From the IMG/VR virus record IMGVR_UViG_3300017963_000188, positions 1-64,000 of that record: a DNA stretch of 64,000 bases. One strand, written 5' to 3'. Shown here in pieces: positions 10,093 through 16,693 of the stretch. The notes beneath the pieces were generated by a model, which saw only the letters and a program-made list of their open reading frames with translations, had not been told where the DNA came from and searched no databases. The translations under genes were made by a program, and so were the position numbers. The first letter of the stretch is position 1, and the number at the start of each line of letters is the position of its first letter.

Positions 10093-10851
10093 ATGAGCAC
10101 ATTGCCAGAACGAAAAGAAGTAGAAGATCAGTTTAGTGAAGTGGTGGATTTCCACAAAGGTCAAGGACGAGGGAAATGGCAGTTACGGATACGACCAGAT
10201 ACTCCCTATGCTTGGTTTATCGCTGAGGATGTTTGCAAAATCCTTGGAATCAAGAACCAGGCTCAAGCTCTGAGAGCTTTAGATGAAGATGAAAAAGCCA
10301 TCATATCTATTGTAGATGATGGGGTTCCTCACAAACTCTCGATTATTTCAGAACCAGGGCTCTATAGCTTGATTCTTAGATCTAGAAAACCAGAAGCAAA
10401 ACCGTTTCGACGGTGGGTAACTCATGATGTTTTACCTACGATTCGAGCCACTGGTAGCTATGGGGCTTTGGAAAACCATCACAAAAAACTTCTTGAAGAG
10501 ATAGATAGGGCTCAGAATCAACTTAGAGCCCTCAAGGAGCACACCATTGAGCTTAAAGAAGCTCTCCCATCCCTAAAGGTTAGTTACGGTAGAAATGTCT
10601 TATACGCCCTTCTGAGGCATGTAGGAGTGCTTCAGTGGGATAACAAACCCAAGCCTGAATATCTTGAAAAAGGTTATTTTGTCATGGAGCCTCAGTCTCG
10701 ATATTCAAAGAAGAAAGACAGGTACAATTGGACCATGAAGTTGAAGGTAACGAAGAAGGGGCTCAGTTTTTTGAAAGAATTGGTACAGGAATGGGAAGTT
10801 GTCAAGGTTCCTCAGAATCAACTGCCAATGCAGAGTCGGAATAAAAAGTAA
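10093..10851 (+). CDS. Bro-N / KilA-C (ANT) phage antirepressor
   Basis: WFIAEDVCKILG, ISEPGLYSLILRSRKPEAKPFRRWVTHDVLPTIR; C-terminal GRNVLYALLR..P..EY.EKGYF..KVTKKG. Confidence 0.92.
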   Translation: MSTLPERKEVEDQFSEVVDFHKGQGRGKWQLRIRPDTPYAWFIAEDVCKILGIKNQAQALRALDEDEKAIISIVDDGVPHKLSIISEPGLYSLILRSRKPEAKPFRRWVTHDVLPTIRATGSYGALENHHKKLLEEIDRAQNQLRALKEHTIELKEALPSLKVSYGRNVLYALLRHVGVLQWDNKPKPEYLEKGYFVMEPQSRYSKKKDRYNWTMKLKVTKKGLSFLKELVQEWEVVKVPQNQLPMQSRNKK

Positions 10852-13468: not shown

Positions 13469-14494
13469 ATGATAGAAAAGATATTCACATTGGAAACTAC
13501 TCAATATTCAACAGCACCTTCAATTTATTTGGCAGGACCTACATATAGAATTATTGATGGTGCAGAACCACCTATAGGGTGGAGAAATAAAGCATCACAG
13601 ATTCTTGAGTCGTGGGAAGGAGCTGTTTATATCCCTGAATGGAGAGGTGGGGTGAAGCCAGAGGGGTGGACTTATAGCAGGCAGGTGGATTGGGAAATGC
13701 AGGCTATGGAGAATGCCACAGTAATTTTGTTTTGGATACCAAGGGAACTTCCAGTTCTCCCAGCCTTTACCACCAATATAGAGTTTGGAGAATTTCTACA
13801 GACTGGAAAGATTGTGGTGGGAGCCCCTAAGGACGCTCCAAACAATCGTTATATATTTGAACGTTGTTCTAGAAGTAATGTCCCTACCAGCCATGACCTC
13901 GAAACTTGTGTGTTGCAAGCCATCAACTTGGTCAAGAGATTACGGGGAGAGATTGATACGGTACATTTCACTGCTGATACTCATTTCAATCATAAAAGAA
14001 CTCTAGAACTATCAAGACGACCATTTTCCAGTGTTCTAGAGATGAATTCTATGATGATTTACTACTGGAACGGGGTAGTATCTAGAAATGGTACTGTGTA
14101 TCATCTTGGTGATTTTGGTGACCCTTCATATATTGAACATCTGAATGGGAAAAAGATCTATATAGTTCCTGGAAACTATGACAAACCAGAGATCCTTGAA
14201 ACTTTGACCAAAGACCCAAGGGTAGAGATTCTTGGTCCACGTAGTTCTTACCATATCGATAACAACTACTTTACCTTGATTCATGCCCCTGAAGATGGGA
14301 AAGATGTGAATATGTTCTATCTCTATGGGCATATCCATAAGCTACAAATGGTGAAAATGAATGGACTCAACGTGGGGGTAGATTGTCACAACTTCACACC
14401 AATAGATGAAAATGAGGTGATGTTCTATCGAAGTGCTGTGATGCAACATTATGATGACAACGTGTTCACGCTAGGTATGGGGATGAACACTTAA
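13469..14494 (+). CDS. nucleoside 2-deoxyribosyltransferase-like domain fused to a calcineurin-like metallophosphoesterase
   Basis: N-terminal IYLAGP..WR..QVDWE..ATVILFWIP..TTNIEFG; C-terminal ADTHFNH, HLGDF, GNYD, YGHIH, NVGVD. Confidence 0.85.
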   Translation: MIEKIFTLETTQYSTAPSIYLAGPTYRIIDGAEPPIGWRNKASQILESWEGAVYIPEWRGGVKPEGWTYSRQVDWEMQAMENATVILFWIPRELPVLPAFTTNIEFGEFLQTGKIVVGAPKDAPNNRYIFERCSRSNVPTSHDLETCVLQAINLVKRLRGEIDTVHFTADTHFNHKRTLELSRRPFSSVLEMNSMMIYYWNGVVSRNGTVYHLGDFGDPSYIEHLNGKKIYIVPGNYDKPEILETLTKDPRVEILGPRSSYHIDNNYFTLIHAPEDGKDVNMFYLYGHIHKLQMVKMNGLNVGVDCHNFTPIDENEVMFYRSAVMQHYDDNVFTLGMGMNT

Positions 14495-14504
14495 AGGAAA
14501 AAGA

Positions 14505-14729
14505 ATGGAAAGACAATATGTAGACACACCAGAAGGGATGCTAGAACTCCTTGAGAAATTTGAAGGTGAGGAGTGCTATAAAGTTCAACATTCAATGTTG
14601 TATGGTTTTATTGTAGGTGATACCGAATATGTTATTCGTTATATACATTTAGCTGGATCTGGTAGAAGTAGAGGAGAGAAGTTCATGATCGTTTTTCAAA
14701 AATTACCAGAAAGAGAAAGTGATGATTGA
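14505..14729 (+). CDS. hypothetical protein
   Basis: ORF in operon. Confidence 0.6.
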   Translation: MERQYVDTPEGMLELLEKFEGEECYKVQHSMLYGFIVGDTEYVIRYIHLAGSGRSRGEKFMIVFQKLPERESDD

Positions 14730-15129
14730 ACAATTTCCGGTACGTCTCATTTGTTGTGGTGATGGGAACATTTCAAAAATCTATGTAGAAGAGAGGGGAA
14801 AAGTATCTGATCCTGAGACTCTAAAGGCACATGTTGAGAGATGGAAAGTGCTCTGGGAATGGGGAGAAGGGACTGAAGAAGAACAGCAACTAGCTTCAGG
14901 GAATTATGATCCAGAAAAGGTTTATGAGTGTTTTCGTAAACATTCAAGAACAACTCATTGTGGATGTACCACACCTTCCTGTCATGCCATGCACATTGTA
15001 CTTCCATTGATTTTTGTACCTTCATTCAATTTGAGTCAAAAATATGGGGTATGTTTTGACATAGCTTTTTTCAGAGTTCTAGAAGTTAAGGGGGCTATCA
15101 CAGATGATGACCGAGCAAACTTCTATTAA
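14719..15129 (+). CDS. hypothetical protein
   Basis: ORF in operon. Confidence 0.65.
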   Translation: MMIEQFPVRLICCGDGNISKIYVEERGKVSDPETLKAHVERWKVLWEWGEGTEEEQQLASGNYDPEKVYECFRKHSRTTHCGCTTPSCHAMHIVLPLIFVPSFNLSQKYGVCFDIAFFRVLEVKGAITDDDRANFY

Positions 15130-15156
15130 AAATCAAAACCAGTATAGTTCTATAGG
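15127..15156 (+). promoter_or_regulatory. probable promoter of the AAAAAT..AGTATAGTTCTAT class
   Basis: AGTATAGTTCTAT also occurs before the ORFs at 15443 and 20194. Confidence 0.55.
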
Positions 15157-15177
15157 GGGGAAATAAAGGAGTGGCTA

Positions 15178-15318
15178 ATGAAATTTTCGACCTATTCTTA
15201 CGGTGCTAGAGAACCAACAAATAAACCTATTGTTGAAGAGCAACTTTCTTTAGCCCATAAATATTACAATACACTGGTAGAGATTGAACTAGGAGGCTTA
15301 GTATTCATGACGCTATAG
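15178..15318 (+). pseudogene. truncated N-terminal fragment of a type V-M (Cas12m / V-U1) or TnpB-derived effector, fused to a CRISPR repeat
   Basis: AAGGAG RBS; translates MKFSTYSYGAREPTNKPIVEEQLSLAHKYYNTLVEIELGGLVFMTL*, matching my recollection of the Y.YG...P...EQL.LAH.Y.N.LVEIE start of V-U1 effectors; reading continues into repeat sequence. Confidence 0.6.
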
Positions 15319-15383
15319 AACACGGTATCAAGACCGTAGACGAAACTGTTGAAATGCCAGCATGGAGGCTTAGTATCCATGAC
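15292..15383 (+). CRISPR. minimal CRISPR array: partial repeat, 36-nt spacer, full 36-nt repeat
   Basis: full repeat GTTGAAATGCCAGCATGGAGGCTTAGTATCCATGAC (15348-15383) with CATGGA/TCCATG stem; 15292-15311 matches its last 20 nt at 19/20; spacer 15312-15347. Confidence 0.65.
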
Positions 15384-15442
15384 GTGGGCCTTGTGTAGTT
15401 ATGATTATGGACAACATAAAAATATAGAGTTAGTATAGTTCT

Positions 15443-15667
15443 ATGGGAGAAAATAAAAATGGGATATGCTGGGGAAAGACTTTGTTCATAATGGACTACA
15501 CAGTTTCAGTTCTGATTGTACCTGACTCTAGAGTAGACTCGTCTCAACTTGTAGAGACAATAAGATCTATAGCTGACGAACTTGGGTATGATGAATCATT
15601 GAAAAGTGACCCATTGTATTTGGCACGGCACATTCGAGGTAGATGTCTATACGAACTAGGAGAATGA
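15443..15667 (+). CDS. hypothetical protein (start uncertain)
   Basis: ORF downstream of an AGTATAGTTCTAT motif. Confidence 0.5.
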   Translation: MGENKNGICWGKTLFIMDYTVSVLIVPDSRVDSSQLVETIRSIADELGYDESLKSDPLYLARHIRGRCLYELGE

Positions 15668-15668
15668 G

Positions 15669-16046
15669 ATGCACAAAGTTGAAGTGACGGTACACAAAGA
15701 CATTCTGGTAATCACAACCAATGATGAAGTGGAGTGTGAAGGTTGGGTCCCAGCAGGTGACGGGAAGATTGGATGTGTACTGATCGACACTAAGGGGAAG
15801 CTAGGTATCAGTGAAGAAGCTCTGGCTTGGCTCAAGAGTGTGGAAAAGAGCTGTGATGCTATCGGAGATGTAGATGCATGGAAATCTGATGATGGACCAT
15901 GCTTCTCATGGCTGGGAGGCCCAAATTCGTTAAAGCAAAGAGGCTGCACTGGAAGTAGGGGGTATAATACATCCTGTCTCGAATATGACATCATCCCCAA
16001 TCAAGTTCCTGAAGAGGCTGTGAAAGTTATTGAGGAGAATACATGA
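15669..16046 (+). CDS. hypothetical protein
   Basis: AGGAG RBS. Confidence 0.7.
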   Translation: MHKVEVTVHKDILVITTNDEVECEGWVPAGDGKIGCVLIDTKGKLGISEEALAWLKSVEKSCDAIGDVDAWKSDDGPCFSWLGGPNSLKQRGCTGSRGYNTSCLEYDIIPNQVPEEAVKVIEENT

Positions 16047-16693
16047 AAATAGTTAAGGAGGGTAGGCCCCAGAAGGGATGGGCAAAAGAATTCAAATGTA
16101 CCGGGAAGGGAAATGGTGATGGTGGATGTGGAGCTGTCCTTCTGGTAGAGAAGGGAGACTTATTCCATACCTATCGGAGCTTTATGGGTCGGGAAGAGGA
16201 ATGGTATACCACATTTGAATGTCCTTGCTGTAAGGTTCTCACCGATATCCAAACACCATTCCAATCTAGTGAACTTCCACATTACAAGGAATGGAAATCT
16301 AAACTTCCAGAATCAAACTACAGACCTGTGGCTAAGGGAAATATCCAAGGGGATCTGTTACGAAGTATGAATCATATCCTAGAAATCTATGAAGATAAAG
16401 ATAATGCAATGGTCAGGATTATCACTGATGGTTCTGACATTAATTTAGAAGAAATCAGGAAAATCATACCTCTAACGGTAGGTATTGAAATAGCAAATAG
16501 TCATGAATTTATGATTCTTTACAATGATGATCGTATGGGTCGTTGTAATACCAACTGTGAGCATAATCATCATTGTGCTTTGAATCGATCTTCCTACAGT
16601 TCAGAGCAACGGCATATCCCTAAATTAGGAATAGATGTTAGTCCTGATGGTGAAATACGGTTGGTCTGTCAAGACAAAATAGAAAGGCTTTGA
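16043..16693 (+). CDS. hypothetical protein with N-terminal zinc ribbon
   Basis: CTGKGNGDGGCGA...CPCC. Confidence 0.7.
   Translation: MKIVKEGRPQKGWAKEFKCTGKGNGDGGCGAVLLVEKGDLFHTYRSFMGREEEWYTTFECPCCKVLTDIQTPFQSSELPHYKEWKSKLPESNYRPVAKGNIQGDLLRSMNHILEIYEDKDNAMVRIITDGSDINLEEIRKIIPLTVGIEIANSHEFMILYNDDRMGRCNTNCEHNHHCALNRSSYSSEQRHIPKLGIDVSPDGEIRLVCQDKIERL

Follow-up and report, generated by a model that had tools for sequence, protein, structure and literature searches.

The locus described here is located in the first 64 kb (the window, i.e., the whole stretch of 64,000 nt that was analysed) of a linear virus genome of 358,038 bp with a G+C content of approximately 40%. Completeness of this linear contig was estimated by CheckV at 100%, and the absence of an effector gene reported below covers the assembled DNA. 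In the vicinity of the locus, the genes are short, encoded on the plus strand, and nearly all without an assigned function; coordinates of all features are given in Table 1. A promoter-like motif is followed by an ORF of 46 codons, a partial repeat (R1'), a spacer (S1), a complete repeat (R2), and a second copy of the motif. No match was obtained for positions 14500-16100 in a similarity search against GenBank phages, an Rfam scan of the whole window returned nothing, and a search for phage relatives via the flanking proteins revealed none with synteny.

The 46-codon ORF is present in seven contigs, of which the three readable ones show 100% identity with the window along 4-12 kb. Neither a variant nor an alternative joint was observed for this region in contigs of two runs (X1 and X2). 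The X1 and X2 contigs are of equal lengths and nearly equal depths, and thus they probably represent one data set deposited twice rather than independent support. With three other assemblies identical and alternative joints lacking, the locus is real DNA and not an assembly artefact. With all available copies 100% identical, the locus shows no divergence that could inform on recency, constraint, or selection.

Table 1. Features of the locus, further copies of the promoter-like motif, and solitary repeats of the same family in viral contigs (positions refer to the window unless stated otherwise).
Feature	Position	Strand	Remarks
Anti-repressor homologue	10093-10851	+	
Phosphoesterase-like protein	13469-14494	+	
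Promoter/operator-like motif, AGTATAGTTCTATAGG plus A-rich tail	15141-15167	+	upstream of the cas12m stub, which it presumably drives
Shine-Dalgarno sequence of the stub, AAGGAG	15166-15171	+	6 nt before the ATG at 15178; read from the sequence
Stub ORF, 46 codons	15178-15318	+	codons 1-38 (15178-15291) correspond to the Cas12m N-terminus
Stub ORF, codons 39-46	up to 15318	+	read from repeat remnant and spacer 1
Stub ORF, stop codon TAG	15316-15318	+	
Truncated repeat R1' (family positions ~14/17 to 36)	15289-15311	+	9.8 bits, E = 2.5, model positions 14-36
Spacer S1, 36 nt	15312-15347	+	sole sequence bordered by repeat material at either end
Intact type V-M repeat R2, 36 nt	15348-15383	+	covariance model, 44.3 bits, E = 1.5e-7
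Sequence after R2 ("spacer 2" of the initial annotation)	15384-15431	+	unique; probably array flank, 3' half in the next promoter
Second motif copy, starts AGTATAGTTCTAT	15432-15458	+	before the next gene
Next gene after R2, 74 aa as called	15443-15667	+	function unknown, no PHROG match
Other motif copies in the window	6042, 7814, 20169	+	13-mer core, at most 1 mismatch
Motif copies beyond the window	genome 107683, 135157	-	
Solitary V-M repeat	L045:1536-1571	+	
Solitary V-M repeats	L011:11121-11156; L012:1551-1586		
Solitary V-M repeats	L063:429-464; L051:4633-4668	-	
Solitary V-M repeats	L046, start 1439; L050, start 1537	-	reverse-complement coordinates

The cas12m stub and the promoter-like motif

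Neither Pfam nor NCBIfam contains a match to the 46-aa ORF, and a tblastn search of its 38-aa N-terminal part against phages gave weak matches only (E of at least 0.07). A phmmer search of the same 38 residues against 1.84 billion representative proteins returned the sequence itself and P0002 only. Residues 5-37 share 67% identity with the N-terminus of P0002, which is a fragment of 149 aa; no repeat was found on its 714-bp contig. The alignment of both sequences led to the IMG/VR contig L006 encoding P0003, an ORF of 627 aa with the same N-terminal motif and with a CRISPR array directly behind it. P0003 matches solved Cas12m structures, namely 23vw_A (E = 4e-51) and Cas12m2 8hio and 8hhl (E of about 1e-23). 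When an HMM of five viral Cas12m homologues was compared to the genome ORFs, the stub frame was recovered at E = 1.4e-7 (profile positions 27-61). Beyond this frame, the HMM found none better than E = 1 among all frames of at least 30 aa in the 358 kb, and the Pfam TnpB/Cas12 families gave nothing above threshold in the genome. Hence, the N-terminal WED/REC segment of Cas12m is present in the stub; the RuvC and zinc-ribbon (TNB) domains and the length of about 580-630 aa are not, and the ORF ends at 46 codons. Homologues continue past the ...LVEIEL of the stub with charged residues. In the stub, the codons beyond this point are derived from a repeat, starting at its position 17. A deletion is therefore placed with its left end at or just past codon 38 (15291) and its right end inside a repeat.

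A 903-aa ORF with the only, weak zinc-ribbon match was considered as a hidden effector and rejected as a class II ribonucleotide reductase. This B12-dependent enzyme of the phage carries a TSCPD domain at its C-terminus and is encoded at genome positions 202411-205125 on the minus strand (L083:912-3620).

The motif upstream of the stub belongs to a small set of similar sites. Its 13-mer core occurs, with at most one mismatch, five times in the window compared to 0.11 expected occurrences, and the genome contains seven copies in total. Of these, five (15141, 15432, 20169, 6042, and 135157 on the minus strand) are situated 24-37 nt before a same-strand ATG with a Shine-Dalgarno sequence. The consensus AGTATAG(T/A)TCTATAGG is partly palindromic, and an A/T-rich element approximately 15-25 nt upstream is common to the motif copies. 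At the second copy, positions 15408-15436 fit a sigma-70-like pattern composed of TGGACA (15408-15413), 17 nt, and TAGTAT. Judged from these sequence features, the motif probably combines a phage promoter with an inverted repeat resembling an operator. Due to the -35-like TGGACA and the common A/T-rich element, at least the 3' half of the sequence initially annotated as a second spacer is assigned to this promoter (15405-15431).

Between the motif at 15141 and the next gene no terminator-like site was found, and thus R2 is probably transcribed. A search among RNA runs returned none containing the region. R2 is located outside of any ORF, reported as 65 nt downstream of the stub stop codon, and is untranslated.

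Regarding the gene behind R2, a 10-codon ORF at 15459-15493 begins 27 nt past the start of the 15432 motif, which is the usual spacing. Its stop codon overlaps a frame-shifted ATG (TAATG) at 15491 within the called 74-aa gene. The actual start of this gene may therefore be 15491, with a coupled leader peptide before it.

The two repeats, their spacers, and the repeat family

A 21-nt direct repeat (15292-15312 and 15364-15384, 20 of 21 positions identical) occurs with a period of 72 nt, corresponding to 36 + 36. When searched as a 20-mer with at most three mismatches, only these two sites were detected in the window (0 expected, 100 shuffles) as well as in the 358-kb genome. The second copy, R2, matches the covariance model of the family over its full length (model positions 1-36). 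Its stem of 6 bp (15361-15366 with 15376-15381) encloses a loop of 9 nt, and its 3' end is GAC. R2 preserves every invariant (11) and every nearly invariant (7) column of the family and agrees with a type V-M repeat in sequence and structure, including the covarying 3' helix (6 of 6 pairs) followed by A(-2) and C(-1). Considered on its own, the R2 hairpin is unremarkable (-7.5 kcal/mol, z = -0.78 compared to shuffles). Since this is near the shuffled level, the fold of the single sequence is insufficient for a claim and significance derives from the family comparison.

In case of the first copy (15276-15311), a full V-M repeat was not found. R1' lacks positions 1-13 together with the 5' stem strand, cas12m codons occupy this place, and so the stem is broken. 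Its sole difference is a T at 15305, which falls on the family-invariant C30. The initial annotation had described the first repeat as devoid of its 5' stem strand and the second one as the only repeat with an intact stem. Both statements are confirmed by the cas12m coding sequence found in place of the missing strand and by the scores of the two copies (Table 1). Likewise supported is its view of the unit as what is left of a type V (Cas12m) array, with the repeat preceding the spacer.

No further repeat copy was detected with the covariance model in the remaining 295 kb, and neither the direct-repeat search nor the model revealed a third repeat after R2. Measured against an array of at least two full repeats with a regular period, the locus has one full and one partial repeat with a period of 72. 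Near-exact copies of the repeat (loop and 3' stem, two free positions) were searched in viral, genome, and metagenome collections, and no array was obtained; apart from the contig itself, the matches were restricted to one by chance within a Bacteroidetes gene and to solitary repeats on two further, unrelated contigs.

Arrays end in a repeat and none is present after R2; the simplest reading is thus that R2 is the terminal repeat and that the sequence from 15384 onwards is flank. As initially annotated, R2 is followed by unique sequence (15384-15431) and then by a promoter motif at 15432. Due to the missing repeat behind it and the overlap with this promoter, the assignment of the 36 nt after R2 as an acquired spacer is probably not correct. 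S1 in turn is located behind the broken R1', and since the guide of a Cas12m crRNA has to be preceded by the 36-nt scaffold, S1 cannot be presented.

In agreement with the initial annotation, which had noticed no spacer match in the window, neither the window nor the remaining genome contained a target for S1 or the sequence after R2, and matches did not exceed 12-13 nt. A wider target check for both of its spacers gave none in GenBank phages and PLSDB plasmids (best E = 4), in IMG/VR (22-nt seeds), or in 438 kb of related loci. A spacer matching a related virus or mobile element, as in viral mini-arrays, was thus not encountered in the collections searched.

The 5' end of S1 (15313-15321) reads CTATAGAAC, the reverse complement of the promoter core GTTCTATAG. 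Such a 9-nt match within the first 10 nt was seen in 0.2-0.4% of control 36-mers. It may reflect chance, or S1 may be derived from the promoter region of a related phage.

The 36-nt repeat of L006, i.e., of the P0003 locus, is identical to R2 at 26 of 36 positions, and differences in the stem are compensatory. A degenerate repeat pattern recovered the family in further viral contigs, and a broader pattern extended it to approximately 25 viral contigs. A Cas12m homologue is encoded in all of the five IMG/VR records first found (G001-G005), with the array directly downstream of cas12m in both records inspected closely. The Cas12m gene of G003 is located at 43-1848 on the minus strand of this record, whose repeat is among those most similar to R2. 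The covariance model (R1) was built from an alignment of 30 distinct repeats of seven contigs, none of them from this phage. In the family helix (columns 14-19 with 29-34), 96.7% of the cells are paired, and 4 of the 6 pairs show compensatory substitutions. Its covariation score was reached by none of 500 shuffles and exceeds that of all slid registers.

At the contig end of G005, the cas12m array consists of four identical 73-nt repeat-spacer units (L006:6913-7185, equal to L008:2472-2744). This arrangement reflects either a single spacer duplicated in tandem or artefactual assembly near the end of the contig.

Solitary repeats of the family are situated 11-42 nt upstream of start codons in Cas12m-encoding phages, often with a Shine-Dalgarno sequence within the would-be guide, and in G004 a solitary repeat precedes cas12m itself by 42 nt. 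The 50 nt after a solitary repeat contained a start codon together with a Shine-Dalgarno sequence in 8 of 29 cases, compared to 7% of random positions. This non-random placement before genes argues for a use of V-M repeats outside of arrays, and the arrangement suggests Cas12m-dependent control of phage mRNAs or autoregulation. A description of such regulatory use in phage leaders was not found in the literature consulted.

In a 123-kb phage fragment with 30% G+C (L078:2091-2170), a solitary V-M repeat, 16 nt, and a T-rich run resemble a stand-alone single-guide RNA gene; this record contains two TnpB/Cas12-like ORFs. Among five viral contigs with a solitary V-M repeat that were checked for cas12m, none was detectable in four. 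Due to the fact that these five contigs are fragments of 11-51% completeness, they are unusable as precedents for RNA anti-CRISPRs (Racrs).

Origin of the locus and alternative explanations

The searches identified the repeat and the gene stub and returned neither an effector nor targets. From the combination of both elements, the locus is very probably a relic of a phage-borne type V-M locus. The complete statement, according to which it is a recent, inert, function-less remnant in the form of a deletion scar, is favoured with moderate confidence. A deletion scar is indicated by the composition of the stub, in which the first 38 cas12m codons run directly into the 3'-terminal 20-23 nt of a repeat, and by the lack of other cas12m or repeat pieces in the genome. 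The phage ancestor would have carried cas12m followed by a short array, presumably expressed from the phage's own motif at 15141. One deletion would have extended from cas12m codon 39 to approximately position 14-17 of a repeat, leaving the promoter, the ribosome-binding site, and 38 cas12m codons, now part of the 46-codon ORF, along with the 3' 20-23 nt of the repeat, one spacer, and the terminal repeat. The intact R2 is probably still transcribed from the 15141 motif in a phage without Cas12m to bind it. Most likely the remnant has no function of its own and would owe its pristine appearance to the recency of the deletion.

Several observations speak against a mere relic. No decay is visible in the promoter motif, the Shine-Dalgarno sequence, the start codon, the 38 conserved codons, and the 18 of 18 conserved repeat positions. 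Selection would give the same result, and a recent deletion explains the undecayed state equally well. Furthermore, the setting consists of small genes of unknown function beside an anti-repressor homologue, and such a region would be a plausible location of counter-defence genes. The non-random placement of solitary repeats before genes in other phages also points away from a mere relic.

Alternatively, the transcript from the 15141 motif with its one perfect V-M scaffold could act as a Racr-like decoy that binds the Cas12m of a host or a rival element, loads it with a useless guide, and thereby titrates the effector from real crRNAs; this guide would be the phage's own flank, with GAC in the PAM position. 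Racrs are known for type V-A and other subtypes (PMC10651486), and Cas12m reads the repeat scaffold directly without a tracrRNA. R2 is intact at every conserved position with a complete stem, it is intergenic and untranslated as the stub ORF ends at 15318, and an intact promoter motif lies upstream of it, while terminators were not detected. However, a perfect, intergenic, and probably transcribed R2 is a precondition for a decoy and not evidence for it, since a recent deletion scar predicts the same anatomy. The 95% identical partial repeat 36 nt upstream turns the unit into a mini-array by the SRUFinder rule. Moreover, R2 has neither a promoter directly in front nor a terminator behind, lies 170 nt into a peptide-encoding transcript, and is present as a single copy, and the repeat scans of viral, genome, and metagenome collections revealed no Cas12m locus with a matching repeat. 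We consider a decoy unlikely. It is tempting to speculate that the stub is a nascent solitary-repeat RNA, in which a phage, after loss of its cas12m, keeps the terminal V-M repeat under an early promoter and sequesters or borrows Cas12m of a host or a rival phage, an idea that we regard as similarly doubtful.

Guidance in trans of a Cas12m supplied by the host or a co-infecting element, by R2 with the next 17-20 nt (15384-15403) or by S1, is quite improbable. It would be directed against a competing phage or plasmid, resulting in superinfection exclusion, or against a host gene. The layout of a 36-nt scaffold 5' of the guide is that of a type V crRNA, viral mini-arrays without cas genes have already been described (PMC10651486), and the 9-nt match of S1 to the promoter core could mean an origin in the promoter of a related phage. 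Against this, S1 follows a repeat without positions 1-13 and the 5' stem strand and cannot be presented, and the sequence after R2 lacks a following repeat and overlaps the next promoter. The phage genome encodes no Cas12m effector, and a protospacer was found neither in the genome nor in GenBank phages, plasmids, IMG/VR (22-mer seeds), and 438 kb of related loci. The occurrence of solitary repeats directly upstream of start codons in G003, G004, L063, and L051, including the one 42 nt before cas12m in G004, and the enrichment near starts (8 of 29 compared to 7% at random) would fit with R2 as a former or present site of Cas12m binding in the leader of the gene behind it. In case of R2, however, a promoter motif is situated between the repeat and the next start codon, which is 60-76 nt away according to the start considered, and thus R2 need not be part of that mRNA. 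The phage has no Cas12m, and the regular 72-nt distance to R1' identifies R2 as a repeat of an array, so that such a cis-regulatory site is very improbable here. A chance repeat next to an unrelated small ORF, with no CRISPR ancestry, could be suspected from a hairpin no better than shuffles (z = -0.78) and an ORF without a Pfam or NCBIfam match. This can hardly be reconciled with two adjoining independent signals, namely the Cas12m N-terminus with E = 1.4e-7 and the V-M repeat matched over its full length with E = 1.5e-7, in the order, strand, and 36 + 36 period of real V-M loci, and is considered extremely unlikely.

Comparison with known systems and significance

In Cas12m2, the crRNA consists of a 36-nt scaffold and a 20-nt guide, and the 3' strand of the helix spans nucleotides -8 to -3, with A(-2) and C(-1) behind it (PMC10442227), an architecture with which R2 agrees; the Cas12m crRNA needs no tracrRNA (PMC11013384). 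Characterised V-M loci (MmCas12m2 and GoCas12m; structures 8HHL/8HIO, 8PM4, and 23VW) share with R2 a 36-nt repeat ending in G-A-C and a helix of 6 bp. Also common to these and the phage locus are the position of the repeat 5' of the spacer and the order gene-then-array, and the N-terminal 38 residues align. In contrast to V-M loci, the phage stub lacks residue 39 to the end, including the RuvC and TNB domains, and the phage locus retains one full repeat and one spacer. The loop of R2 comprises 9 nt, compared to 8 nt as described for Cas12m2.

Intact phage-borne counterparts are given by the myxophage MV-1 and the IMG/VR records G001-G005, in which cas12m is accompanied by an adjacent array without adaptation genes, whereas a stub is left here. 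The arrays of G001-G005 belong to the same repeat family as R2. A preprint calls the Cas12m of myxophage MV-1 the first one from a bacteriophage (bioRxiv 10.64898/2026.09.14.751636); beside it stand the Cas12m homologues with arrays in the five IMG/VR records and the repeat family in approximately 25 viral contigs.

Racrs have been proven for type V-A (RacrVA1-3; Camara-Wilpert et al. 2023, PMC10651486). Similar to Racrs and solitary repeat units (SRUs), R2 is a phage-carried, intergenic repeat downstream of a promoter-like motif and without a matching cas gene. The published rule assigns a full repeat to the mini-arrays, and not to the SRUs, when a partial repeat of at least 90% identity lies within 100 bp of it (PMC10651486). 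R2 resembles an SRU in so far as it is an intergenic full repeat on an element without cas genes, but it is not solitary due to the partial repeat, identical at 20 of 21 positions, 36 nt upstream. Apart from this neighbour within 100 bp, R2 differs from Racrs and SRUs in its origin from the phage's own cas locus. Among the rows examined of the SRU table of the Racr paper (PMC10651486), there were no V-M entries; these rows include another contig of the same metagenome and not this one.

As in mini-arrays of viruses that lack cas genes (Faure et al. 2019, cited in PMC10651486), one spacer is situated between two repeat copies and an effector is absent. In contrast to these, the leader-side R1' is truncated and cannot form a scaffold, no target in a related virus was found, and the attached cas12m stub reveals the origin of the array. 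Orphan mini-arrays and CRISPR relics are known from viruses; the V-M subtype and the attached gene stub are new.

Phage-encoded V-M systems are barely described, and at present the locus is an annotated relic which shows that such systems are also lost in phages and what remains, namely a gene stub fused to a repeat and a perfect repeat downstream of a promoter motif. Such leftovers are plausible raw material for orphan mini-arrays and RNA anti-CRISPRs. If R2 bound Cas12m in trans, RNA anti-CRISPRs or guide borrowing would extend to a silencing, non-cutting effector, and R2 would be the first RNA anti-CRISPR or trans guide for the DNA-binding, non-cutting V-M effector. This would also be direct evidence that elements of this type can arise by decay of phage CRISPR-Cas loci instead of capture from host arrays. 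The comparison set of approximately 25 contigs, with many solitary repeats located just before start codons, may be of greater value than the relic itself.
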